Below the pieces are notes generated by a model. It made no database searches, was not told the DNA's origin, and was given only the letters and a program-made list of their open reading frames with translations. Position numbers and translations under genes: made by a program. DNA of 48,753 bases from Lenisia limosa (Eukaryota > Protista > Breviatea): the NCBI GenBank assembly GCA_001655205.1, contig LPNZ01007964.1, positions 1 through 48,753 of the forward strand, read 5' to 3'. Positions 8,059 through 30,747 of the stretch are shown piece after piece. The first letter of the stretch is position 1. Every line of letters starts with the position of its first letter.

Positions 8059-9599
8059 ATGGCAGCCTCAATCACCCTCCTTCCACACATTGGAGTGGCG
8101 AATATTTACTGCCCTGAGCAATGGGTAAATGATGCAGTAGTGGAGGTCAAATTCCTTTCTTCAAATCAGGTTAGACTATGAAGGCCATTTGTCTCTCTTT
8201 TTTTGTTTTCTATGACTCTTTAGATTCAGGTGATATGTGGAGTGAAGTTCTTGAACGTATTTATTGGAGGTGGGAGAGAATTGTGACAGAATCAAATACA
8301 AACAGCAGAAAAAAGGATGATTGAGACATAATCCTTCAGATACGCCATACTCATTTGCAGTTGACGGCAGTGAAGCGTATTCACCTCCGAGCCTCACCAA
8401 CAATGTCCTTCGGATGTCTTTGGATGTCCAAAGCTGTGACATCATCCCCGAGGCTGCAAGGCTTGTTATTGACCCACGGGACTTTGACAGAGCCAAAACT
8501 TCAGTCTTGAGGTGCCGACAGTGCAGCACTCATCTCACGTCCGAGCCTTTTGAAGAGATTTCTGGAGAACCCTCGGCTTTATGGGCTGACCTTGCGGACC
8601 TCTGGATATGTTGGAGGGTTATAGAAGCATATGAAGAATTGGCGAGACCCACTTAGCTTTGAAGAGAATAGTTAAAAATTATGAAAAGAATAAAATGGTT
8701 ATATCCCCCAGGTGGGCATATTGGGCAAGAAGCTTGCCATGCAGGTGCTGACGTCACCAAACCTGTGCATCCCGCCCCCGGCAGACTACTTGTTGGTGAA
8801 AGTACTTTAAGGTATGACCTATTCTATGATAAATTTGGAGTTTGGTGTGACTTTCAGATTTCGGAGTGAATTGCTTGTACAATCTTCCGTGAAGGATGAT
8901 ATAGAAGCGGGTGTCATTCGATGCTCGCAGTGTGACACTGCCATTGGGCCATTGTTGAGCAGAGGTGACGTGTACAATGAGGGCAGAACTGAAGTCGAAC
9001 TTTGGGCTTTCCGGATTATACAACCGGGGCGGGACACTGCGAACCTTCTTGAGTCATCAAGCCTTGGCCAAGCTATTGCCTCTGATGCAGTCAGTGTGTG
9101 GGCACGACAAGGTCAACAATGGTGGGGCACGTGACTTTTCTTGTGGCGGATATCTGTTCTTGTCCGTGTTCCTGATTGTTGCAGGTGGGCAATTACCGAT
9201 AACATTTCGGCGGAAGTATCACGTGAGTCACTATCTTCAAAGTTCACTGGCGTGTCTCTGGGAGTCGTTTATCAAGATGATGCTAAAGTTAATGGTATGA
9301 TGTTTTCAATTACTTTTGAGGCTACTGAGGAGAAGTGTACTGTATGGGATAATATATAATGCACATAGTCAATGCTTTATCATATTGTTTATTTGCGTAT
9401 TATCATTTGTCACAGAATGAGATACATATGTATGTTTGACTTTTTCCAAGACGAGTCTTCGATATCGCTCTTTCCAAAGAGGTTCCTCAGATTTGCCGAG
9501 ACCGCTGCACCTTTACCCGAAGGCCCTCGCCCGCTGGAGGAATTGGACAGTGATGATGACTTCGAAGAGATTCAACAGAGAAGTGGGAACTTCCCTTGA
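8059..9599 (+). CDS. UBE3D: UBE3D-like (HECT_2 / E2-binding) ubiquitin ligase
   Basis: LRCRQCSTHL...PSALWADLADLWIC|GH matches the CxxC...PSxxWxxLxxxWxCH motif of UBE3D. A second CxxC follows (IRCSQCDTAIG...VELWAFRI). ATG at 8059, last exon ends ...GNFP* at 9599. Confidence 0.75.
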
Positions 9600-10105
9600 C
9601 CATTGTTTTACATATTTCCGCTCTAGCGTATTTAGCCTACTAATAACGATAAACACATCCCGCTTCATTTAACTTGTCTTCAGAAGCAGCTGAAAAGGGG
9701 ACCAAATCAACATGTTGTCATGGTGCGTGGGGTTGGATACATTCCTGATGAGATATATTTGATTGAGTAGGTGCTTCGAAGTCAAACGTAACAACTGTCG
9801 CCGTTTTAGCCATCCATGATGCTTTGGTTGACGAAGCCATTCAGGTATTAACAAAGGCAAAGGAATCTGGCTTCCTCCCACTTTCATAGGTTGTCCCTGG
9901 TACTATGGTGTTGATGCTAATATTTATTCTGATTTAAGATTTAACTGTTTTTTGGAAGCCACGAAGTATTGTACAACATAAATAATAATAAAGAAACCCA
10001 ACTAAAGGTCCCTAAATATTTCGCCATTACAGAGCTTCAAAATAGCCTGAGCCTTGAGAATGAGAAATGACAGCACCACACCTTGGAAGGTACCATGATA
10101 GACCT

Positions 10106-13100
10106 TTACATATCTCTTTCGCCTCGGCAGATTGAACAGCCAAAACAGAATTCGTTTCCATTTGGGGGGTGAACTGTGTTACATGAGCATTTAGGTAGTT
10201 CGTTGTGAGGTCTGAAAGGACATTAAAATGAATCTAGAACGTACTTTCGTGCAATTCTTGGAGCAATTTTATGGCATTCGTCACAAAAGTGTGTTGTTCC
10301 CTGAAGTCATCAGAGAATTCTGATGGTGTTCCAAGGCAACCCACTCACCCAGCAGTACCACACAGCAACTTTGCAACAAAATCGACATTTGTATTGACTA
10401 AATTGTCATATTGGACAAAAAAAAAAAGGCACCTTCCTTACATAAAATCAGTTCCATGCTTTTTGCATCCTTTAGTTTGCCCACTACAGGAGGGGCACAC
10501 AAGGTCCTCTCGCTTGATATTGGATTCCTACAACCGCATTAGCACTTAGCAGAACTTTCATACCTCAACATCGACAGCGCCACAAGCTCGAAGCCCTCCA
10601 AAGTACGGCGTCTACGGGATAAGTAACTGTAACTGATCTGTGTCTCATGTTTCAAGACCCACATTGCACTTGAAGCAAAGATAGTAATTGAAGACAGAAA
10701 GGGCAAATTGAAGGGGGGTCATGTCCTTCTTCTTTGCTTCGTCCTCTCTAGAAACGGAATAAAGTCCAGAAAATATGACCGAACCCACATACACATCAGT
10801 AAAACAGTCTACCATATCAAACAAATAACACATTATTGCTGTGTCAAATACCCACCAACCTTTGTTCGTATTTGAGTCTACGAACAGCCCGATCCTAAAG
10901 CAGTTAATGCGACAGGACGTTGTTGGTCAAACACACGTGATAGTCCTTTTCAAGCTGCAAGTCCTTTGTGATGTACTTGGTTAATCTGTCGTGGTCCATT
11001 CGCGTACTGCAAAGAGGGCAGTTCAAGAAGTTGAAGCCTGTACGAGTGACCAGAGTTTTAAAAATATTTCAAAATATGATAATTGAAAAAGGCACATGAT
11101 AATGATTCAATACAGAGGGAAATGAATCCACAAACTCATGCGAGAAGTCGGCCATCGAGCTTTGACTTTGTCTTTGATGCACTGCCAATGAATAACATGT
11201 CCACATTTGAGCTGAATACTGGGTTCATCTGATAAGCTGGACACACTACAATGTGTCAAGATTTGATTGCGTGTATATAGTATAGGTATCAGCCATCACA
11301 GACAACAACGTGAATGCACAAACAGCTCACAAGCAAATGTTGCAAAAATCTTCAGCATTTGTAGGCATCTTTCCTGAGGGGGGGTTGCAGACCTACATAT
11401 AGTATATATATATAAAAAAAAAGTTAGACAATCGAAATGCACGGTATCAAGCCTCCCCTCCTACGGCCTCGTTGAATTCGACACAATCTTCCCGGAGACA
11501 GCCGATATGATCCTTTTCATGAGCAATACCGCAGCACCAATGTCCACATGGCAGCTTCGATGCACAACATGACTTATACAGGGTGTGGCATTCAGTGGAG
11601 TCGCAAACCTCCTGCCTATATCCTCTTGCACTAAAAAAATTATCATTAATACTCAGTTCTGTTGTTCATTATCTCATGGGACTCACTTTGGAAGAACAGC
11701 TGACTGACAAAAACGACATTGTTTCCCCTCAAGACGGAACTTCTCCTCATCACATGTGCGGTTCTCGTGATAAGGGTGCGCCTGTTTCAATTAAAAGAGG
11801 AAAACTCAACTCACCTCACAAGACATGCAAAACTCGGAATTACACTGCGGACATCTAAATTGTCAAAAGAAACTTGAGACGTGCTACAACACGAAACAAA
11901 AGGCCATCCCTTGAAGCCCAACCTGGCATGGTATGTGGCATAGTGTTTTCGAGACTCTTCACTCATCTGCTGACCTTTGGACTGGAAACAATAAGACAGC
12001 AAATTCCTTATCAACATGACAGTATGATGCTAATGATTGTTGTTGTAAAATAGGAACAATATCATTACGAAAAGCTCATCTGTATATTTGAACAAATCAG
12101 CATATTTGCAGCCTCGGATGAACAAAAAAGAATGGTTCATCCAAATCAATTAATATGAGAAATGATGATTTAATAGCCAACAGCCCACGTCTTTCTGAGG
12201 AGCGGAATCTAGTTTGCCGTCTCCAAGCTGCATAGAAAACATGGTCTTGCAGGAAGGGCATTCCTTAGCCTTCAACGTTAAACAAGCACCATGCAGGACT
12301 CACATCTACGTCTGAAAGGAAGCGCTTGAGGACCGCCTTCTCCCATCTCGCAAACGCTTTCGGCGTCAACAGAATCTAGAATTGTGTCATTGTGAATGGA
12401 ACAGCCAACTCCATTATTTTGTGAGGAAAATAAATGAATTTTGAAATTAATAGGTCTCTCCCATACGTGGAAATGTGAAATATAACAAGGGAATAAATGA
12501 CCTTAGCCATCTAGGGTAGTCATTCATACATGAATTACATGTATATACTATATGATATAGTTTTTTTGGCCTTGACCCCATGAAGGTATATGATATTATA
12601 TGATATATTATGATATACTATATATTTTCAAAGTTTGGGGTCTGTATTCAAACGTTTCTTTGTATTTTCGATATAATTTTCCATAACCAATGAGAAATCA
12701 GTAATATTACGAATTTCTGAGAGTTTAACAACTTTAATCGGTGAACTCTCATTTACATCAGAATTACAATCTAAAATATATATTCAACATCTTACCCGCT
12801 GACCCCATGTGTGTATATATTGTANNNNNNNNNNNNNNNNNNNNNNNNNNNNNNNNNNNNNNNNNNNNNNNNNNNNNNNNNNNNNNNNNNNNNNNNNNNN
12901 NNNNNNNNNNNNNNNNACATCACATTATAAGAGCTATTTCATAGTACTTATTATCTGCACAGTAATAGGAAATCAAAAACAAGGAGCTTACACTGAAATC
13001 AGACTCCAACAACTGCATGCCACACTCCTTCTTGGTTTTGGGGTCGATGAATGGGCAGGTTGGGATGTCATGGCCTATGGATTTCTTAGCTCGCATACCC

Positions 13101-14101
13101 GCACAGGTCCGACAGACTCGATGGTAACATGCCTAAAGGGGTCATATTGGATCATATTCGCTCCATTTTGCAATGCTAACAAAAAACCTCAACCTACATC
13201 AAGAGTGTACATGTGGTCCAAAATGAACATCTTATCACACCATCGGCAGAGTTCTTTTTTGATTGAATTTTCCTCCTCTATTATCTTCAACGCCAGCCTG
13301 ATAAGTGAGTATAACTGTTAAAAATAATAATCATGACATCGTGACTGTGTTATCCCCCAAACAATCTGGTCTTCTCTACATTCTCTTTTTCCTTGGCAGA
13401 GATGACATCTAAGGCTATGAAATGAAATAAAGAAACAAAACCCTTCCTACCCATTTGATAAGAATGGTCCTCTCTTTTCTTCATTGCAGGAGTCGAGGTT
13501 TGCACTTTCCAGTCCCAATGATGGTCGGAAGGCTGAAACATGAGCCTCAAGCAACGTTCCAACCTTGGGTGTCTTTTGCTGCGGCGCATATGGAGCATCC
13601 CGCCTGACGGGTAAAGGGTCGGCAGAAAGAACCTGAACGTATTAGCAGTAACCATGACTATAGTTGGGTTGTTATGCCGACCTGTTTGGAGAGAGGTGTC
13701 ATTGCAGTTACGTCTTGGAGCCTTCTTGGTGGCATATTTTGAGGCCTACTCACTGAAGGAGCCTGGGGCTTGGCCTGGCGACTGAGCTTTGCCGGAGAGA
13801 TCACGTCCTGTTCGGAAGACCTCTTTAAACCCCACTTCTCCATGATCTCCGCATCATGGCTGCCAACATTGTTTTTTTCTTCCATTTGATTCAAACAAGC
13901 TTCTTTCTCGGGAAGAGGTGGGTTGCGAAGTTTATACGAGAGAGTTTCAGAATCGCTTTCCACTCTTTGTCCCTGTGGATAGTGTTGATTCGCGCTTGAT
14001 TGATGATCAGAAAAGTCCAAAACCGTTGGGACCAGATTGGAAGATTCACTAAATAAATAAGTGGAAATAGAATAGTAACTAACGCTGAACCTCTGCGCCA
14101 T
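10106..14101 (-). CDS. E3 ubiquitin ligase: RING1 + IBR fused to a MYCBP2/PHR-type RING-H2 + tandem-cysteine (RING-Cys-relay) module
   Basis: Spliced: CRWC..ACYHRVCRTC..CPFIDPKTKKEC (RING1); ECPSC..CPQCNSEFCMSCEAHPYHENRTC (IBR); CRFC..VCDSTEC..LPCGHWCCG; AEDFCNIC..IQLKCGHVIHWQC..RWP..FNFLNCPLC (RING-H2); [75 protein letters not shown]. The C-terminal half is co-linear with the MYCBP2 C-terminus. Confidence 0.9.
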
Positions 14102-14453
14102 TTTGCTCTTGGTTTACGTGGAGGAGGGTCCATAGATCATAGCAAGAAGGCGAAGGGGCGAAGGGAACAAAAAAATAGCAAAAAAGCAATAGAAGATCAT
14201 AGATCGTCTGCCTACCCACGTGTCGTGGCCCCATCACCAACAAGACAAGGCCAACAAACAACAAGGGAAAAAACGGACAAACGGACAAACACAGACAGCT
14301 TAAAAAACCCAGCTTCAGGAAAAATGTAACAGTACGCAGTTATTGTACGCTTCCCTTGCTGTCTGCTGCATGTGTTTTAGTATTACAAAGGATACATAGA
14401 ATATCAGGTAGCGTCTTTCACATTCAACAGTTCTTCCTTCAGTCTTCCTCAGA

Positions 14454-17400
14454 ATGGAGGTAGAATCCAGTGAGACCCACTCAGATTCTCTGCAAAATGA
14501 AGGTGGGGTTTTACATTTAAAGACACATTACTCAATTGAAGGAGGGGGCCCTGTCAAGAAAGCCAGCGAATTCAATCAGGATACCCACAAGTCTGTTCAA
14601 CCACTCTCAAATCAGGTATGCCTAATGATAGTAGTAGATATGTAAATGAATATGTTAATGATCTTGTTTTGTGTTACTCTCCAGTTTATCGGGTTTGCGC
14701 TTCCACCAAAGCCATCCACTCCAAAAAACCCATCTTTAAAGAACAAAGTCATCAATTTTTCAAAGTACACAAAAAACACTTTAAGTAAGGGCTTGTCTAT
14801 TTCAGAATACGTCTTACACTTTAGTTCCCCGGCTCTCTTTGCCTTCAGAATGCAATATTGTGGAAGAAAACAAAATGGATAAAGTTGAAAGTGACAATCA
14901 CGAAATAATAAAGGATGAAGAAGATATACAAGAAGAAGAACCTGATCTTAATGGGAGTGAAGTACTCTGCTCACCTTCTCCTAAGTCCCACAGGATCAAA
15001 TCCCAGCCGCGAGTTGTTCTGAAGCCGCTCGCTGTCCCACCATCCCTTCTTCCAGTTACCCAACCAAAGAGGCTGCGTAAGCGAACAAAACAGCCGCAGC
15101 CACCGTCACACCTGGGTATTCCGAGGGAAACAAGGGGACGAAGGAAGGACCTGTCAGAACTCTTTTCAGACAGTGACTCCATTGAGGACGACGGTGACGA
15201 AGATTTAATGATTGATCGGCCGAAATGTAACATTCCACACCAGTACGTTGACATCCAGGTACGTGGCGGTTTGTTTATCATTAGATCATCGATTTCACAC
15301 CCCGCAGGGTCCAAGCAGGTACAGAGAAGTTATGTCCTTTCTGTTTGGAAAGTCCAATTCACAGGTGCCTCTTTTGGACAAACCTTGTCAAAAAGGTGGG
15401 CTACTTTGGCCATCTTTTCTTACACATTAGGCAATCAGCAGAAAGTGCCGATTTTTGCAGCACATCTTAGGAGCCGGACAAAATCCCTTTCATTCGACCT
15501 CCCAATCCGGGCATATCCAACTGAAACGTAAGAACCATAAGGGGCTAAGTGGAGGGTGTGAATAGATACTTGAAAAGCACTAATGACTCAACAGGTACCC
15601 CTTCGTTTCCCTTGTTCCAGTTGTCAAGCCAACGGATAGGAAAGTTCCGAAATCTAGACTGTCTCCAATGATATCTGAAGGTGAATGGTGTCGCCACCCA
15701 ATGCCAAGTGTTACTGCAGACCATAAAGGAAGAGCTGAACCGAACTGGGATGAAATGACTGAAGCGAGGACTCGGCTTTATAAGGTGAGATCGCGGCCTG
15801 CTTACTAATGATGTTGTCAGGCCTGTGTCACGAAGGTCATTGACTTTGCTGCGGGGGTAGACTTCGGCTGGGCAACCCCAAAGGAATATATTCGACTGTA
15901 AGCTGTGTGGCCGTTTTTAAGCGCCATCTCAGTCTTATATTTCCTAACCTCTTAGAATTAACACATCACATAGCCTTTTGAACTCTGATAATTTGGTAAA
16001 GGGGATCAAGTGCAAGTGCCATTCAGACACTGCTACAAAACCGGGTCATTAATTCAATAAATCAACCTGTGTGCATCATTTTTATCAAAATATTCAGAAA
16101 AAACTTTACATACCTCCATAAACTCTTTTTTTTAAAAAAAAAAGCATTCCCCTCAATGTAATGCTTTAGGGCTCATCCCTTCTTCACTATGCTGCCCGTC
16201 ACTTGCCTCTCCCATTGTTTTGTGAAACCCTAACCCGGCAGCTACCTGTTGTTCCAAATGTGGGTCATAGATGGCAATCATGGAGTACTTACAAATATAG
16301 GCTCTTGGGCAAACCGCTTTTGATTGGGCTTCTACTGACGAGAAAAAAGCAGCATTAGTGGTGAGAAGGGAGTTTTCATTGTCATATTATCGTCATATTT
16401 GTCACCATAAATAGATTGTATACGGCCGGCCTGATGGTACACTTTCTGACTTCCCGGTGCTGATCCAAGGAGTACTCGAGTATGTCACTACATTGACTTT
16501 TGAATGTCTTGGTGTTAAGACTCCTCTCTTCATAATTGAATCTCAGTCGTCTTCTCTACCAGTTCTGTTGTCAGAGTAGCTATGTTGAACTTCCCAAGAA
16601 GTGGAACGAATCAACTCGCTCCGCGTTTCTTTCAAAGTAAGCTTGAAATAACAAGATCATCACATTCGGCATTCCTTCACTTCACAGTACAGATCACAAA
16701 TTAGTCCTTCACTCTTCAGGTATCGACCGGTGCACTTTCTGATTTCAGCGGACACCCGTAAAGAAGCTGTTTTGCCACCACCAGCCGCGCCTCTTTTGCT
16801 TCCGCCTCCCGACCCAAGGGACGAAATTCGAGCAACAATGGGGCTGCGCACACGCAAACGCTCACAGAAAGCAATGGCTATGCAAAATATCCAAGACAAG
16901 CCTCCTCCCTTAGTCGTTAAGAGGAAGGCCAAGAAAGCCAGCACCAAAAAGCCTGCTATTACAACAGTGAGCACCGAACCCGTGTCGCTCAATGAGGTGT
17001 TCCCGAATCCTCCTCAAGAATCGCCATCGTTACCACCTTTGTTGTCCCTTTCAACGCCTGTTACTTTGCCCCCAAGCATAACTTCAACCAAACCATTCCA
17101 GCCACCTGTCAAATTAAGCAACCCTCTACCAACTATTCCCGCACAAGCACCAGAGAACCAACAACCTGAACTTCAGCCCCCTCTAGACTCCACCACCCCA
17201 TTTGCCGTTCTAATCACCCCATTTAAGAGGAGCCGCAGCACTGCACGAAAAGTGTCGCACTCCACGCATCCCTCCTTCCTCCCACCTCTCCCAGTAGACT
17301 ACAAGCCAACCCTGGTTTCAACATACTACACCCCACCAAATGTTCCCAAACTGCCACATGGGTTTGTAATTGTCTATGTCGGCTCAAAACCTGCTGATTC

Positions 17401-19445
17401 TGAATTGCATCATAAACCGCCATCTCATAGTCACCGTCCCTCCACCGTGTCCGTTGTTGAGCCTGCTGTAGCTCAGATCAAAATGCTCAAGGAGAAGGCG
17501 AGGAAGCAAGCACTGATTGATGCTGCCAAGAGAGAATTGGCTGAAGAAGCTCGGATGGAAAAACGAAAGGCCAAAGAACAAAGAAGGCTGGAAAGAAGAG
17601 AAAAGGAAAAAAAGAGGGCAGCTCTGCGACTTGAACTCATTGAAAAAGCACGGAGAGAAGCCGAAAAAGCGGCAATGGAGTTGGCAAACAAAGAATACCG
17701 GAGCCCTGAGCCGACCCTCTCCTATGATGTTGATGTTGGTCTCACTTTAGATATGTCAGATGAAGTGAACGAAAAAGTGCCCAACACTCTGAAAGAAATA
17801 AAAGATACTAAGAATAAGTTCAAGCTCTCTTCTAGTTTCAAACCTATTCCCAAGGCTACTAAAATCGAGGTAAATGGATTTCCCTGACTTGAAAGTGTCG
17901 GTGTCATGTTTACTTTTTAGAGGAAACAGGAAGTCGTGAAAAAGTCAAAAGTGGCGTCCATCTCAAGTCGCCGTCGCCAACTTGCTGACAAACTGGCTAA
18001 ACCGACCCTCCCTTCCCATGAGTCTCATGAGCCCTACGACCCCCCTTTTGAGCCAGAAAGAACGGTTTGTTGCCCGAGGTTTGCTTTCATCTTCCAGTGG
18101 CCGGAACCCAAGACAGAAGAACCGCCTGTTGTCATTGGGCGTAACCCGTTCTACTTCCGTCCGCTCAAGTCCCTTTCTTTCGGCAAGCCGGTGGTTTGTG
18201 GCTATTTCATTTGTTTTCTTTTTATTATTATGTTTTTTTGCAAACAAAGGAGCCTATAACGCATATTTGACCTTTCTAGGTCCAAGAGCCTGAGGTGCTG
18301 ACTTCTAAACAACGCAAGTTTCTGAGTCTCCACTCGTCTGAAGAGATATCGCGGCCTGGTCCCATGCCAAATCAATACGTTGTGTTCCATGAAAAGCCTC
18401 TTAGGTTTGATTGATCTCAGCTGAATTCTTGGTTCTTGTTGTGACCTTTTCAGATTCATTCACAAAACGATTCAACAAATTGAGGCAGCTCTCACACGAA
18501 AACCCAAGTTGCAAACTCCAAAAAGGAAGGTTGAGAGAGCCAAGGCCAAAGTCCGAAAAGACCATCATCATCACCCATCCCGCCCGAATCCTTCCAAAAA
18601 AGTAATCCCCCCTGACGATGGTCTGGGACATTTCGAAGTGGGAGCGCCAATGTCATCTCCCGTTATCTCATCTCTCTTGGATTGTCTTCATGACTCCAAC
18701 GTCGAAAGTACTCCACAGGGCTTGGAGTTGACAGATATGAAGCAAGATGCAGAGAAGGAAGAAGAGAAGATAGAGCTTGATATCAAAGCGAAGGAGAAGA
18801 CAGGAGAGAAGAAAGAACCAGTTGAAAAAAAGACAGGTATTATTGAGGATAAGGAAGAACAGAAAGAGGAGACTGGTAAGACAATATTGGAAGAGAGGGA
18901 CACTGATGTGGATAAAGAGAAGGTAAAACCGAAGATCTTGGAGAGTAAAAAAGAAAAAGAAGAGAAGGTGTGTGAAGAAAAGTTAGAACAAAAGAATGTG
19001 GCGAATGAAGAGAAGAAAAAACATGAGAAGAGCAAAGAAGAGAAGGACAATGATGAGAGTAAGGAAAGCAAGAAACATGATAAGAGGAAAGAAAAGAAGA
19101 AGGAACATCAGAAGAAAGAGAAAAAACGAACTACTGAGCCTGGAGAAGCCCCACCCCTTGCCTCATCTTATCATGAGATGTCCAAGAAAAGGCATAAAAG
19201 TAGAAATCATCACTCTAGCGATAAACACAAACATGACTCAAGTTCGCGTAAAAGAAGCTCAAGTGATCGTCATCGAAGCCATCGCGACTATGATCTGGAG
19301 GGCTATGATCGCGATTCTAATTATCACAGATCCCACGAGAGAAGTCGCAAATATGAAAATCGTGGGATCATGGGTTATATTTATTGTCTGTTCTACAATA
19401 AGTGTGGCGTTCTAATCAATTTTAGGTAGTTCTTCTAGATGGTAA
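14454..19445 (+). CDS. Large protein with a short ankyrin-repeat region, Pro-rich linker, coiled coil and K/E-rich then R/S/H-rich C-terminus
   Basis: Exons GSSLLHYAARHLP (about 16170) and LGQTAFDWAS (about 16305) are ankyrin-type motifs. Long ORFs at 16730-17887 and 18509-19429 carry the low-complexity parts. Last micro-exon RSSSRW* ends at 19445. Confidence 0.6.
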
Positions 19446-19838: not shown

Positions 19839-21074
19839 TCATGGTTCCTTATTTCGGTTGACTCTTTCTTCATGAGCCAGCGACACCAAAGCATTGAAAG
19901 GGGAGAAACTGGAAATGGGCTTGATTGTCTTGGAGGATAATTATACCAAGCTACTTCCTTACCTCATCTGAGGGTTTAGGCACAGAATTTTGACGTTTGG
20001 GGGAGATGGAGGGAGGGTTCATAGCAAGTAAGGTTTTAGGTCGCAAGTGGTGAGGAGATGCAGGGGGGGGCTGAAATATCATTTCATTACCATTCCATAC
20101 TGATTTCAACGGATCAACTCTTGTGCTTATTTTCTTGTCTTTTTTTCGCGGCCAAGAATCCTTAAGATTACACACAAAAGAGGTGTGACCAAACCATTTC
20201 GTCAGAGTCATCATCCTCATCTGAGAATGACCTCCTCTGAGGCTTTCTTCGCGTGACTATTTCTTCTGTCCGTCGACGATCTCCTGCAGGCAGTGTTGGC
20301 AGCATTCTATAGAGCCGTCAATTTCGCTGATGTCTACTCACTTTCCTTTTCCTGATTCTGCAATATGACGTTGCTCGTGTCGCTTTCTGTCACACTCCTG
20401 CTTGTTAAATCTGTCACCATTATAGCCCACCTGGAAAAAGCCTTGTGAGCATGTTGAACAAGGGTAGGGACGTTCATTTAAATGTCCTGCCAAAAGATGG
20501 TATTCCAAAGAGTTCACACGGTCATAAACCTAAGTCATCACAAAAGGAAAATGCAAAAATGCAAAAAAAAAAAAACTCAAACCTTAGTGCAGTTTTCTGC
20601 TCCACAAAACCATTGCCTAAGCCGCACATTAACATAAAAAACAATTTTTCGCCCAGAAGGTGCAAGAAAGTGGAACATTGGAAGCTCTAACTTGCTGTCG
20701 ATGTGCTTAGGGTATGAAGTTGGAGTTGAGAACTCTTTGCCGTCGAGCTGGTCATGATACTGCTGCTGAAGACTTTGGTGCTTAAAGAGTGTGGTTGGAT
20801 GCACTTCAACAGGCTGAAATTGCATTGATACATCACTGACTGAGGAATCGGGTAAAGAATCGGAGGCCGAGGGCGTTGATTCGGTCTTAGCAATCATTGC
20901 ATTAATCCGTTGGAAGGGGAGGGGGGAGTCGTTTACAGAACGCCATCCTTGCGAAGATGAAAACGTTGCTGTATAAGCTCCAGAAGCCGGAGGCGAAGGG
21001 TCAGTGGTGCTCGTTACAAACCGCAATGGACCACTAGCTTGTATCGTCGGAGCAACTGGTAACGGCTCTTCCAT
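19839..21074 (-). CDS. C2H2 zinc-finger protein with two fingers; likely transcription factor
   Basis: Spliced WFCGAENCTK|VYDRVNSLEYHLLAGH-LNERPY-PCSTCSQGFFQ|QECDRKRHEQRH gives two CxxC..HxxxH fingers joined by a TGEKPY-like linker. Confidence 0.75.
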
Positions 21075-21321
21075 TACATTGTCTAGCACAGGAAACTATC
21101 TTAATAAAGGTGTTTCTTTTCAAATCAAATATGCTAACTCTAATGTGAAACAATACGTAATTCCTCGAATCTATTTCTCCGAGGGCAACTTCAAATTACT
21201 TGAGAGAGTATAAACAAAACAACAACACCCCAGTCAATAAGCTGCAAAACAAAACAAATAATTATTTTTTTTGTAAAAAGAAATTTCACTAAAAGAGGAA
21301 GATAATATCACCAAAAAAGGT

Positions 21322-25205: not shown

Positions 25206-28200
25206 TTATTTCTTGCTGATTAAAGAATCACTGATTGGGCGAGTGGGCTTTGTCCATCCAACTGGAACGGCCTGATAGTGAGAAAAGGAGAGCAATACTT
25301 TCAAGATAAAGATGATAAGTATAATGTAAAAAGAGAAATAAAACAACAATACTAATGAAACTTGAAAAACAATGGTGAAAGAAAAGCCACAAAAGAAAAC
25401 CACAAAATCAACATCCACCCTCCCCACCAAATCCTGCCGCACGCCATTTGAAGCAACTGGGGAGTGGACACTGGGCACCCGCGAAGACGTGCTCTGCACC
25501 ACCCGGGCCGTGCTCATTGGCGGTCGTTGTGAGCCCATGGCTGCAACTGACACGCTGGTGACCAGAGGGATGGCTGGAAGTTGGGACGGGATCGGAGTGG
25601 AATGAGGCGGCGCCGGGGGGGATGGCATTGGGAGGTTGGGAATTGATGGTGGCGGTGCGGATGAGGACGGTGGCGGTACGACGACGCGAGCTTTGGCCTC
25701 GGCTATTCGTTCTTCAACGGTCTTCATGTAAATCTGGAAAATAAAAACGAGATATCACTGGAAGAAAAGAGTCACAAAAAGACCGAGATTACTGAGTTAA
25801 ACTAATAGTGATTATGAATGATGCTTGAAATATGAAACGCGACAGTATTGCAGAAAAAAAAAGATCAAGTCTCCTAATTCATACCATGGCTTGACGCTTT
25901 CGAATATTGAACTCTCCAAGATTCTCTTTGTGGCTCACGGGGCTGACTATCTGCAGTGTTGCTGGCTGGAACATCTGAGGAGTGAGGGGGAGGGGAGGGG
26001 GCATAAAAAAAAAAAGGTATGAAACTTTTGTAGAACACACTAGGTAAGAGATGGCAAATATGCGAAACAAGACCCCCTTACAAAGCCCTCGTAGCAATGC
26101 CTCTTCGAAAGGCGGAAGCGCACACGCCCTTCAATGTGCTGACTCAGCTTTACCGCGGCTTTGAGGAAGTAAGCACTCTCGTTTTGAGCTGAAGGGTGAA
26201 GGGAAGGGAGAAGGTGAGGAGGGGGGGGGGGGAATATNNNNNNNNNNNNNNNNNNNNNNNNNNNNNNNNNNNNNNNNNNNNNNNNNNNNNNNNNNNNNNN
26301 NNNNNNNNNNNNNNNNNNNNNNNNNNNNNNNNTCACGATTCATTGTATGGTAGAGACGGGCGTTGTCGAAGAGCAAACGAACATCTGACAGGAACTCCTC
26401 GCGGGTGGGGTACGCGTCACAAATAATCTTGTCCTCAATACGGAAGAGGCCTGTAGGGGATAAGCTATTTCACAACAAGCTCTTGGATTTTAGTTTGGTG
26501 CAAGTATAAATAGCTCTTCTCTTGAACCATAATAAATTTGCCAAAACCCACAGATGGGGTTCTTGATGGTTTGGTAGTAATTCTTCACATCTTCAGCAAC
26601 GTCATAACGGAAATCGCTACGGGGTAAGAGCAAATAAACAAATGACAATGTGACACAGTTTCCACTTTGAATAGAGTCGCAATTATCCGAAAACCAACTT
26701 TGAGGTGTAATGGTCAAAAGCTTCCCTGATAATGGCGCGCAGTGACCGTTGGAAAGTCAAATGATCCGTTTTCTCCCATGAAGTACTAAAAAAAAACAGT
26801 CAGAACAAATCAATGATCGATAAAATCAGAGTGTTTTATCCTTTCAATCTGAATCACCCGAAGAACCCACTCCTCAGCCTTCCAATTCGAATCCGCCACG
26901 CCTGGAACGTCTTCAATCCTATACTCGGAAACCGTGGAGAAGTCCAGGCCTTTTTGGACGCTTGTGAACTGTCCCATTTGGTCGACTTGGGTCATGAAGC
27001 GCTGGGGGGGGGGGGGGGGNNNNNNNNNNNNNNNNNNNNNNNNNNNNNNNNNNNNNNNNNNNNNNNNNNNNNNNNNNNNNNNNNNNNNNNNNNNNNNNNN
27101 NNNNNATTCGAAAAATTTAAAGAAAAAATGAGGAAAACAACTTTTGCTCAAAAAAAACAAAAAACAAATAAAAAATCAGAACTCATCCTAGCTCCACCTT
27201 TCGGCTATTTTGGAGAAGGTCGTGGCTGGAGGTGTAGTTAACATGGGGGTGGATTCGGCACTCCATCAGAACAGCCCCATCATAATGCTTGATAAACTAA
27301 ATGACGTCAGCTTACTTGTCTTTTTAGAGCAATGGTTTTAGAGCAAAAGAAGAAAGGGGTTGATGAAAGCCCTAGCTCAAAGATTTGCATCCACAAATAC
27401 TCTCCTATCATCCACATCACCATAGAACAACACCTCCTGATCCCCACCTCTTGCCATCTCGAATCCGGAAGTCTCAACTCTTTGTCAAATCCTGGAGAAA
27501 TAAGAAAGGGGAAGGGGGAAAGGAAATGATTGGAAGAAAAAAACAGTATTGAGACAGTATTGAGTGCCGTTTTGCAGAATATTGAGGACAAGGATTCTAA
27601 ACAAACCTTGTTTTTTGAAGAAGGGTATGGCAAAATTGTCAGCATAGGTCAGGATATTGTGAATATTGTTCCGCTTGGCCCATTCCTGCGGAAATTAACA
27701 CTATCATAATCAAGCAATTTGTCGAAGAAATTAAACACGGTTCAATTCAAATGGAATATTTTCACTAAAGGGCTACCTTGAGATGGTTCATCATAAGTCT
27801 TCCGTAGCCCTTAACTTGGGAACCACTCGACACTGCACAGAACACCACCTAAAAAGAAAATTTAGCAATGATGACATTATCTACACATTCTATCAATATG
27901 ACACATGTAGGTTCAATCAAGTAATAGTGTTTACATCGGCCGGGGAAAGACCTGTGAAATAACACTATTCAGTCATATTCAGGGTAAAGCGAAACTCAAA
28001 GAAGAATGTTCTCAGAGGTGAAAAGTGTGACAAAGGGTAATTAATAATGAAAGGCTGAAAGCAGTCACCCCCCTCCCCCCAACCTCGACAAATCCATTAT
28101 CAGCGAAAGGCCGGAACGCAACTCCTCCGACTACNNNNNNNNNNNNNNNNNNNNNNNNNNNNNNNNNNNNNNNNNNNNNNNNAACACGCCGTAATGTGTC

Positions 28201-30747
28201 GTCGGTCAAACACTACCCTGCCTAAATGTGTCACCACTAGGGCTTCCCTAGGTCCGAAAAATACCGTTAAAATATCAATATTTATCAAGTATTTATCGAG
28301 AAATTCAGTCTCTTTTTTTGGGACCGTGGGTAGCCTCAGGGAAGCCCTAGTCACCAGAAAAAGTCCGCGGGATTTTTGCAAGGAAGTTACTCTATTTGAA
28401 CTGGCCTTATTATATTTCCCACCGACAGTATTTCAAGATTGTTCCTGACCCCCTTACTGATATAATCTCGAAGCATTTTTGGCATTCTTTTGATGAAGAC
28501 ATTTTTGGCCTGAAGGAGATGAGTCTAAAAACACTTGCGAATGAAAGCGAGAAAGAATAATTTAATTCAATTTGAGTCCTCGTAAAAAGTGGCAGAACTG
28601 ACCTGGTCAAGCCATAAGAGCGCCGATCGAGAACCATCGTTGTGGACTAGAATGACGTTGAGTGTGGCTTGATCCTCGTCAGGGGTCAGGACGGAGTGGT
28701 TGCCATGGTGGCCTGAAATGCGTTAATATCGATTATTTGAAGGATTTCCTTCTCCAAAACAACGCTAATTAGCCGAAGGTCCACAAAAACAGATGTACTT
28801 AGGAGATTCCTGATGTAGCTTACCTCCAGAAAAGAACTTATTGAATAGTGCCAGTTCTTCTCGCATCTCATCCTCCAGACCAAACTCCTGCCGGGGTAAG
28901 TTGGTTCGAGAAGGGATGAGCCAGTCCAAGTACCCCCTTCCTGTGCCATACTGTGAGAATTGTGTGGACAAAATCGGGGACGAGTTGGCGAGCATTTGCA
29001 GAAAGCTGGACTTGACGTAGCCTGAAGGGGATTAAAAACACACATACGACACAGACACACACACTTGAAGAGAATGTAATAAAATAGTAGATATGATATA
29101 TTCTCCTAGGAATGTATCAGTCCAACTGCAAACCTTGATAAAACAAGGGGGCCGAAAGCGGCAAGTAAGCTGCTTCCGAAGGCTCTAGTAACCGAAATAT
29201 TTGATTCAATACATTGCCTTAGTCTGTGGGGTTAATCAAATAAAGCTACGTTATTTGTAGGAGATTATCGGATTGAGGACTCAAGCTTCCCTACAGTCCA
29301 AAAAAAAATAATCCTAGAACAACAAAAAATTTTCGGAGAAATTAGATAAGACAATACCCATCTAGACGCCCTATCAAGAAGATGCCCAGCAAGGGGGACA
29401 GCATTACCCAATACCCACTTTGACTTCATGACATCCTCTTCAGAAGAATGGTCCAGGCTGAGGTAATAGGAATAGTCCTATGTCATAAGAGAGAGAGAGG
29501 GGGGTGAGGGGTACACTATCTGTTATTTTCAAAATATGATGTTGATTCCCCTAATTACCCCCCCCCCTCCATTTAAAATATCATGTTAAAGCATACAAAA
29601 TGATCAAAAAGCCTCAGAAACGCGAGTCCTGTTTCATGAAGCGCCTTTTGAAGTTTCACATGTCCGGCAGAGACAATCTAAGGATTAGACAGAAAAAAGG
29701 CGCGCAAATCAAAAACAGCACAAAATGGTTGCAAAAGCGAACCTGGATCGTAGCTGCGTAAAGAGTCTTCTCGTCAAACGTAGGAAACTCACCAGCCTGT
29801 TAAAATTAGCCATACTTCCCCACAAAAAAACAAAACGAGCGAAACGCGTCGTTTACCTTAAGAAGGCGGGGCAGCCGACTCAACGGCATCGTCTCGGTAG
29901 CCTGTTTGGGTGGAAGGTCGGTGTGCCATGGCTTATCAGCAATCTGAACCGGGTCGTCGTCCTTTGTAGATTCGGGAACAGCGGGGGAGGGGGATCGGGA
30001 GCGTGTGGGGTGGGCGGCAGGGATGTAGAGGGGAATGTTGGAGAATTGGTTTGCGGATGGTGCTGGGTATTGCGGTGCTGGGTAGGGGACAACAATCTTC
30101 TTGCGCTTTGGTAAGTTTTGGTGTCTGAAGCGTGAGAAGACTCCACAAAGAAACGAATGCAAAATAAGATAAAAAATGGAGAAAAAAAAAGAGAGAGAAA
30201 CAGCAACTACGTTTATCAGTTATTCCGTTGAGAGTAAAATCTGAATCGGAACCAAATTGCCAATTACCAACCTTTGAAGAATCTCAACATCATTGACTCT
30301 GTGGACAGGAGCTCTCCTCTCGCGAGGTTTCTCTGTGTATCCTTCAGGCTCCCTCAATGCACTGATGTAGGTAGGTCGTTTCGGCGGCAGTTGGCTGCCA
30401 GCAAACATTTTGTCAACAGTAAGCTGCGTCTTTTTGACGTTGGGAGAGTGGGAAGAGGCTGAGGAGATTAACAGTCCAGACTTTGCCTTACCTGCAACTC
30501 TAAAATAGTCTTTTCCATGCTTATGCTGCTCCTTAGATACCAAATTTGCGGAAGGTGCAGCGACAAGACCGCTCCGTTTAGGCAGAGAGGAAACCTTAGA
30601 AGGATCCTGTCGATTCGGCGACTGTTTAGAATTCATATCTACCAAAAAGTTGCCTTCAGCAATTCCTTGACGCTTATCTCTCCTTGGGGATTTGGAAAAG
30701 GTAGTCCTGAGAGGCTTCTGCCCATCTTCTGGTCCTTGTGGGGGCAT
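25206..30747 (-). CDS. GCN5: GCN5/PCAF-family histone acetyltransferase with bromodomain, long N-terminal region and Pro-rich C-terminal tail
   Basis: HAT: AKNVFIKRMPKMLRDYI|SRVVFDRRH..VVGGVAFRPFADNGFVE|VVFCAVSSGSQVKGYGRLMMNHLK|..LTYADNFAIPFFKKQ|GF..FIKHYDGAVLMEC..IEDVPG, with the catalytic Glu retained. Bromodomain: NYYQTIKNPI..YPTREEFLSDVRLLFDNARLY..AYFLKAAVKL. Confidence 0.93.
28240..28347. mobile_element. MITE (108 bp, TA-flanked, GGGCTT termini) in a GCN5 intron
   Basis: ta|gggcttccct ... agggaagccc|ta, with subterminal ggtccgaaaaa / ttttttgggacc. Shares 19 internal bp with the element at 47392. Confidence 0.75.

Follow-up and report, generated by a model that had tools for sequence, protein, structure and literature searches.

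A RING1-IBR protein with a MYCBP2-type RING-Cys-relay module encoded in Lenisia limosa

Contig LPNZ01007964.1 of the breviate Lenisia limosa (assembly GCA_001655205.1), analysed here over positions 1 to 48,753 (the whole of this stretch is called the window), carries on its minus strand, between 14101 and 10106, a sequence in which parts of two classes of ubiquitin ligase stand one behind the other: the RING1-IBR part of an RBR ligase and the RING-Cys-relay (RCR) module of MYCBP2. The question raised by this locus is whether both parts belong to one protein and, if so, how such a protein would transfer ubiquitin and where the combination comes from. The locus is a real, expressed gene encoding a protein of 704 residues, and homologue searches identify this protein as a member of a large, so far unstudied protist family and not as a one-off hybrid. 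With a probability of about 0.78, it may be read as a compact ligase of the RCR class, from an old and pan-eukaryotic family, in which a RING-H2 domain docks the E2, ubiquitin is relayed from C600 to C650, and RING1-IBR is accessory.

The gene has 22 exons, and its coding sequence (CDS, 14101-10106) is an open frame of 2115 nt, with 704 codons and a TAA stop at 10108-10106, which is the low end of the interval given for the ligase in a first-pass annotation made from the sequence alone. All introns are GT-AG, with lengths ranging from 33 to 616 nt. Exons were chained by frame and GT..AG ends, giving 18 exons for the 13300-10106 part, and four more were forced on the 5' side by the anchor positions of the RNA contig described below. 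The coding exons are as follows:

14101-13682, 13632-13564, 13532-13451, 13414-13380; minus strand; exons 1-4 (CDS), from frame, length and RNA coverage
13314-13198, 13132-12992, 12375-12304, 12269-12189, 11981-11923; minus strand; exons 5-9, from GT-AG ends and RNA contig joints
11854-11815, 11781-11687, 11630-11465, 11392-11331, 11245-11136; minus strand; exons 10-14, from the same evidence
11037-10937, 10894-10860, 10747-10663, 10611-10564, 10527-10442; minus strand; exons 15-19, from the same evidence
10397-10349, 10300-10245, 10211-10106; minus strand; exons 20-22, from the same evidence

An AA..AG intron (13481-13415) was considered for the 5' part and dropped; the three canonical exons 13632-13564, 13532-13451 and 13414-13380 fit length, frame and coverage. 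The ATG at 14101 is likely to be the start codon.

Contigs of two public runs, one of RNA-seq (X1) and one of DNA (X2), were placed on 9400-14900. Record 2 of run X1 is one spliced RNA contig of 2213 nt, which spans 14093 to 9971 on the minus strand and whose joints are the splice sites of the model (e.g., 10211/10245, 10397/10442, 10611/10663, 10747/10860, 11245/11331, 11630/11687 and 11854/11923). Its length is the sum of 2107 nt from the CDS and 106 nt from the 3' untranslated region (UTR), and in bins with coding exons only, the coverage predicted from the model agrees with the depth table within 0.3 depth units, mostly within 0.1. Since every exon of the 22-exon model is matched by this single contig, one transcript carries both RING1-IBR and the relay module, as the first-pass annotation had supposed. 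Moreover, the junction between IBR and the cysteine-rich zinc module that follows it (ZnMid) is an ordinary 56-nt intron; it is spliced out in the RNA contig, and the alternative of two genes is thus rejected.

A run of N (12825-12916, no strand) lies within the locus and several exons are very short, features that would also be expected if the whole were an artefact, be it two neighbouring genes, a mis-join across the gap, or a pseudogene. However, the gap holds no coding sequence, being placed inside intron 6, which extends over 616 nt between exon 6 (end at 12992, phase 0) and exon 7 (start at 12375, phase 0). On the RNA contig, exon 6 runs from record position 717 to 856 and exon 12 from 1204 to 1371; the 347 nt in between correspond exactly to exons 7-11 (72+81+59+40+95), so that no exon is hidden in the gap. 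A DNA contig from X2 also spans the gap, with 90 letters across. Taking into account that all 22 exons are spliced together in the RNA contig, in a single open frame, and that all conserved residues are intact in the 704-residue protein, an artefact is extremely improbable. Beside the gap, at 12730-12772, several very short DNA contigs show a depth of 50-135, two to three times the local value of 38, and the assembly was probably interrupted here by a repeat within intron 6.

Domain layout and catalytic residues

The 704-residue protein consists, in this order, of a domain-free N-terminus, RING1, IBR, ZnMid, RING-H2, linker helices and a tandem-cysteine (TC) domain, which are encoded as follows (hidden Markov models, HMMs, were cut from the family alignment):

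14101 to about 13260, minus strand: N-terminal region, about residues 1-220 (exons 1-4, 13380-14101, encode residues 1-202)
13022-13248, minus strand: RING1, C3HC4, residues 225-278, with ligands C225, C228, C243, H245, C248, C251, C267 and C278 (RING1 HMM, 2e-06)
11752-12260, minus strand: IBR, C316-C382, in exons 8-11 (IBR HMM, 1e-18)
11483-11718, minus strand: ZnMid, cysteine-rich module, C394-C453 (ZnMid HMM, 1e-16)
11009-11344, minus strand: RING-H2, C476-C526, with ligands C476, C479, C494, H496, H499, C502, C523 and C526 (RINGH2 HMM, 2e-27)
10678-11008, minus strand: linker helices, residues 527-585, in continuous alignment with bat MYCBP2
10127-10677, minus strand: TC domain, C586-C698 (TC HMM, 3e-46)

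These coordinates agree with the spans and motif positions that the first-pass annotation had given for RING1, IBR, RING-H2 and TC. Pfam applied to single exons gives weak RING matches only, since the introns split the domains (RING1 itself is interrupted by one of 65 nt), and the piece in exon 14, from RING-H2, is among those matched. Pfam, AlphaFold2 (AF2) and fold searches were carried out on homologues, onto which the 704-residue protein was mapped locally. In the IBR a long insert separates the first and second pairs of zinc ligands, and Pfam IBR (PF01485) is above cut-off on homologues P0031 and P0021. ZnMid is marked by the motifs CRFC, VCxxxEC, CGHxC and GCLxxxC, and RING-H2 has the E2-contact-type residues I478 and P524. 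The N-terminal region gave no Pfam match on the 140-residue first exon, alignments to nearly all homologues begin only at about residues 180-290, and this region is probably lineage-specific and disordered.

The part behind the IBR is a complete MYCBP2-type module, as had been proposed. The C-terminus of bat MYCBP2 is 36% identical to the 704-residue protein over 332 residues (E 8e-66), in an alignment that starts at ZnMid, and the ZnMid HMM matches bat MYCBP2 at 3e-15. Given that ZnMid stands directly before the RING in MYCBP2 fragments from bat, turtle, insect, barnacle, sea-spider and nematode, it belongs to the MYCBP2-type module. Against the PDB, the family profile covers the MYCBP2 RCR chains 5O6C and 6T7F from end to end (E 1e-101), and it also matches the RING1-IBR of ARIH1 (1.4e-10), ARIH2, RNF216 and HOIL-1, with E values of 1e-10 to 1e-7. 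The AF2 model of the closest homologue (P0001, from Anaeramoeba ignava), built with 102 relatives, has a pLDDT of 91.7 and a pTM of 0.77. Its residues 249-483 superpose on 6T7F with a Z of 19.3, helices 309-359 being those of the linker region, and for residues 3-168 a fit over about 130 residues is obtained to the RING1-IBR of HOIP, RNF216, HOIL-1, parkin and ARIH2, with Z values of 9-11; with RING1 domains of RBR ligases the model aligns at Z values of 9-12.

The catalytic RING2/Rcat that would follow in an RBR ligase was looked for after the IBR and not found: Pfam IBR matches the homologues only once, and the RBR structures align to residues 3-168 of the P0001 model, none of them beyond residue 169. 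This agrees with the earlier statement that RING1 and IBR are not followed by an Rcat. The possibility that ZnMid is a degenerate Rcat was examined and not adopted. Exon 12 found no match in the PDB with phmmer, and ZnMid folded alone gave a Foldseek E above 2 against the PDB and a VIA Z of 2.6, with no Rcat match; a very distant relation would be compatible with the moderate confidence of the isolated model (pLDDT 74.6). In the absence of an Rcat cysteine domain, RING1-IBR cannot act as an RBR alone.

Both relay-cysteine positions are intact, at the codons that the first-pass annotation had reported, and the residues that would accompany them are also found:

10582-10584, minus strand: C600, upstream relay cysteine, in the motif YFGGLRAC; aligns with MYCBP2 C4520; in 40/40 family members
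10352-10354, minus strand: C650, downstream (esterification-site) cysteine; aligns with MYCBP2 C4572; in 39/40
10271-10273, minus strand: H661; aligns with MYCBP2 H4583; in 39/40
10504-10506, minus strand: D614; at the position of MYCBP2 E4534

The numbers C4520 and C4572 were obtained by adding 4377 to the chain index of 5O6C, which gives the numbering of the entry. H4583 and E4534 are reportedly the triad residues of MYCBP2 (attributed to Pao et al. 2018). Over 40 relatives, the triad-acid column contains E in 22, D in 11, H in 5 and N in 2, and the mediator loop, from the GG motif to the acid, measures 20 residues both in bat MYCBP2 and in the 704-residue protein, aligned without gaps. In the RCR mechanism, the E2 is bound by the RING, the first thioester is formed at the mediator-loop cysteine, and ubiquitin is relayed over about 24 Å to a Cys/His/Glu site, which in MYCBP2 esterifies Thr or Ser (PMC9120709, PMC9527308). 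The 704-residue protein fits these features, with a RING upstream, a TC domain with all its ligands, a mediator-loop cysteine, and a downstream cysteine with His and an acid.

Taken as a whole, the likeness to MYCBP2 comprises the order of ZnMid, RING-H2, linker helices and TC, all zinc ligands, the triad His, an upstream cysteine in a GG-x3-C loop of equal length, and a downstream cysteine in C-[FW]-G-T-T-H-F-C. However, MYCBP2 has about 4600 residues, the triad acid is Asp here and Glu in MYCBP2, and Trp replaces the Phe that follows the downstream cysteine. The RCC1-like, PHR, RAE1-, FBXO45- and Myc-binding regions of MYCBP2 are lacking, and the earlier remark that no RCC1, PHR or filamin domains are seen is upheld, with about 220 residues available before RING1. 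The protein resembles RBR ligases (ARIH1/HHARI, ARIH2, HOIP, HOIL-1, RNF216 and parkin) in its C3HC4 RING1, in the helical connector and in the RBR-type fold of its IBR, whereas it differs from them in lacking the catalytic cysteine of RING2/Rcat, in having ZnMid after the IBR, and in a RING1 surface that is poorly conserved.

Relatives across eukaryotes and the history of RING1-IBR

The 704-residue protein itself is absent from the protein collections searched, where the best matches are 37-39% identical. A phmmer search with exon 12 gave 24 representatives, the best being P0001 of A. ignava (487 residues), which aligns with residues 225-699 at 37% identity over 486 residues (E 7e-112). When P0001 was used as query, 138 proteins were obtained, with named sources that include Anaeramoeba, Planoprotostelium, Piromyces, Moneuplotes, Rhodelphis, a pavlovalean haptophyte and two 'Eukaryota sp.' strains, which we take to be Provora. 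A. flamelloides is also among the named members, and Spongospora, Diplonema, Pseudocohnilembus and a fern came from a second search. Clusters of the AlphaFold DB (AFDB) contain entries labelled 'RCR-type E3 ubiquitin transferase', including F0ZCM3, Q55BN2, D2UXL3 and L8H7M3, presumably from Dictyostelium, Naegleria and Acanthamoeba; judging from their accession numbers, we assume that other entries in these clusters come from Oxytricha and Chara.

The complete order RING1-IBR-ZnMid-RING-H2-linker-TC is found with the family HMMs in about 80 of 141 proteins, which bears out the earlier remark that related predicted proteins might exist in other protists. Most of the others are shorter at the N-terminus, many of them come from short contigs, and they may be truncated. 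Identity to the 40 best matches is 31-42% over about 310-620 residues, and of the 84 columns with a conservation of 90% or more in the family, the 704-residue protein retains 81, including every Cys, His and zinc ligand. Relay-type proteins of this family are small (450-800 residues), and their N-terminal additions vary (C2, RanBP zinc finger, discoidin, Macro). The L. limosa and Anaeramoeba proteins differ from most relatives in having His at the first Cys of the CLPC motif of ZnMid.

Automatic database names already call the relatives 'E3 ubiquitin-protein ligase MYCBP2' or 'RCR-type E3 ubiquitin transferase'; the gene described here adds a new member to an unstudied family, which itself forms a new variant within the RCR class. 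A full-text search of the literature found no description of non-animal RCR proteins or of their RING1-IBR. The sole mention found concerns a Dictyostelium 'mycBP2/Highwire-like' protein (DDB_G0284853), which is named in passing and failed a binding test (PMC6743453).

As regards animals, RING1 and IBR were not found with unfiltered family HMMs in seven C-terminal fragments of MYCBP2 with 170-470 upstream residues, nor in two nematode fragments with 110-200, and Pfam on a 700-residue bat fragment gave RING only. In two AFDB entries of about 500 and 940 residues, which may or may not be animal MYCBP2, the alignments start at model residue 32. However, a hidden RING1-IBR in animal MYCBP2 was considered and is not supported in the fragments examined by either the unfiltered HMMs or Pfam.

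A quick maximum-likelihood tree of the part from ZnMid to TC (unrooted, short search) places the 13 animal rows, without exception, in one clade (99% SH-aLRT), every other branch being formed by IBR-bearing rows from other lineages. The 704-residue protein falls together with the copies from Anaeramoeba (97% SH-aLRT). Since the family is present in fungi, Amoebozoa and distant supergroups, it is more economical to assume that RING1-IBR was lost on the stem of the animals, and on this sequence evidence the arrangement RING1-IBR-RCR looks ancestral and the animal form derived. The first-pass annotation had described a hybrid in which an RBR front end was grafted onto the relay module. Taking into account that the same order recurs in more than 100 homologues from many supergroups, with animals as one clade without RING1-IBR, 'hybrid' fits the anatomy, and 'grafted' probably does not describe the history.

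A bolder proposal would be that the RCR class arose from an RBR-type ligase by replacement of Rcat with ZnMid, RING-H2 and TC, that animal MYCBP2 later lost RING1-IBR, and that the ancestral RING1-IBR engages ubiquitin or ubiquitin-charged E2 (E2~Ub) and gates or feeds the relay. We regard it as a tentative possibility, with the odds clearly against it. If true, the enzyme would have three stations and combine two RINGs with a pair of catalytic cysteines, a type not described so far.

Other combinations were observed among the relatives. The bivalve proteins P0150, P0153 and P0164 (Mercenaria, Mya) contain a Macro domain, a partial ZnMid, a MYCBP2-type RING, linker helices and, at the place of TC, a zinc domain of IBR/Rcat type, a layout that is the reverse of the RCR/RBR mosaic. 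In P0137, P0143 and P0144, Macro is followed by a full RCR module. These bivalve Macro relatives have the MYCBP2-type RING and linker in common with the L. limosa protein, and some of them a full TC; Macro takes the place of RING1-IBR. P0003 (744 residues) shows three tandem ZnMid-RING-H2 units, followed by a single linker and TC domain.

E2 docking and the proposed relay

The presence of two RINGs in one protein raises the question of which of them docks the E2. Mean pairwise identity outside the zinc ligands distributes as follows:

RING1, 14%
RING1-IBR connector, 18%
ZnMid, 27%
IBR, 31%
RING-H2, 41%
TC, 42%

Two positions of E2-contact type were compared: one lies two residues behind the first Cys, the other directly behind the seventh ligand, where a Pro is usual. 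RING-H2 has Ile at the former in 38/40 sequences and Pro at the latter in 37/40, whereas RING1 varies, with Ile in 10/40 and K, L, V or S in the rest. RING-H2 is favoured because it keeps its contact residues while RING1 does not, and conservation thus makes it the likelier E2 dock, as in MYCBP2. The earlier suggestion of two E2-docking RINGs is not favoured by these data, RING1 being the least conserved domain and variable at the positions of E2-contact type.

It is proposed that E2~Ub would dock on RING-H2 through the conserved surface of I478 and P524, and that ubiquitin would pass by transthiolation to C600 on the mediator loop. Later, ubiquitin would be relayed from C600 to C650, from which its discharge, aided by H661 and D614, would probably occur onto a hydroxyl (Thr or Ser) or another non-lysine nucleophile. 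Non-lysine ubiquitination by the 704-residue protein is a plausible prediction. RING1-IBR would most likely be accessory, binding ubiquitin or E2~Ub, acting as an allosteric or autoinhibitory part, or selecting partners; the functions of ubiquitin or E2~Ub binding, allostery and autoinhibition are natural guesses from the role of this part in RBR ligases. What has been observed is how the gene is built, that it gives one transcript, its homology, the folds present in the family and the conservation of its catalytic residues. How catalysis proceeds, what kind of product is formed and what RING1-IBR contributes are deduced from comparison with known ligases.

Another entry route could be imagined, following the idea of the first-pass annotation, in which RING1-IBR holds E2~Ub in an open state, as in RBR ligases, and passes ubiquitin to C600, either alone or beside RING-H2. 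E2s, perhaps different ones, would then have two points of entry. In favour of this route, RING1-IBR is folded as in RBR ligases, with the inter-domain helix, and shows the profile match to ARIH1; all eight RING1 ligands are kept in the 704-residue protein and in at least 90% of the full-length relatives; and in the 704-residue protein a Pro follows the seventh ligand, as in many E2-binding RINGs. Nevertheless, the gap between RING1 and RING-H2 in identity (14% vs 41%) and in the contact Ile speaks against this route, and animal MYCBP2 works without RING1-IBR (PMC9120709). For these reasons it is judged quite unlikely.

At the other extreme, RING1-IBR could be purely a scaffold or a module for recognition of partners or substrates, making no contact with ubiquitin or E2, with catalysis exactly as in MYCBP2. 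The strong differences of the RING1 surface between lineages are those expected of a specificity module, and the N-terminal additions of the relatives differ as well. However, the IBR is fairly conserved outside its ligands, and RING1 and IBR occur together in the same 80 or so proteins mentioned above. Since the IBR is conserved and the pair is kept together, a common rather than lineage-specific job is indicated, and this possibility seems doubtful, if somewhat less so than the RBR-like entry.

Several points weigh against the preferred reading, that of a RING-H2 dock and a C600-to-C650 relay with RING1-IBR as accessory. The RNA support comes from a single small run, as an assembled contig and not as long reads; at its 5' end this contig falls 8 nt short of the ATG at 14101, so that it fixes neither the start of transcription nor the start codon. 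The predicted structure is that of the 37%-identical homologue P0001 and not of the 704-residue protein, and the triad acid is Asp (D614) instead of Glu. No experimental study of any family member was found in the literature, in line with the first-pass annotation, which knew of no experimental characterisation of this architecture. Finally, the conservation of the RING1 zinc ligands in at least 90% of full-length members means that RING1 is under selection for some function.

With regard to its significance, the relay module is pan-eukaryotic, occurs in small proteins and, outside animals, stands regularly behind an RBR-type RING1-IBR, by which an evolutionary link between two RING-dependent transthiolating classes of ligase is indicated. 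Small natural enzymes, such as the 487-residue protein of Anaeramoeba, should be far easier than MYCBP2 to express and crystallise, and could serve as test beds for the relay, for hydroxyl selectivity and for the role of the second RING. The family also provides candidate enzymes for non-lysine ubiquitination in protists, including the model organism Dictyostelium. Its value for ubiquitin enzymology and evolution lies mainly at the family level, and less in this single locus.

Flanking features of the locus

In other parts of the window, six open reading frames or exons of 170-385 residues (14839-19429, 20577-21089, 25206-25727 and 30220-30747) gave no Pfam match, and for the one of 385 residues no convincing Atlas neighbour was found. 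Downstream of the stop codon, the following was observed:

10053-10081, minus strand: tiny intron of 29 nt in the 3' UTR, with GT..AG ends
9450-9900, plus strand: convergent neighbouring gene

The 29-nt intron lies 25 nt past the stop codon and is missing from the RNA contig of the ligase, in which 29 letters are omitted at 10052. The convergent neighbour is represented by an RNA contig of 811 nt with GT..AG joints at 9582/9684 and 9721/9770. This contig stops at 9900, so that about 70 nt separate it from the ligase transcript, whose 3' end is at 9971.

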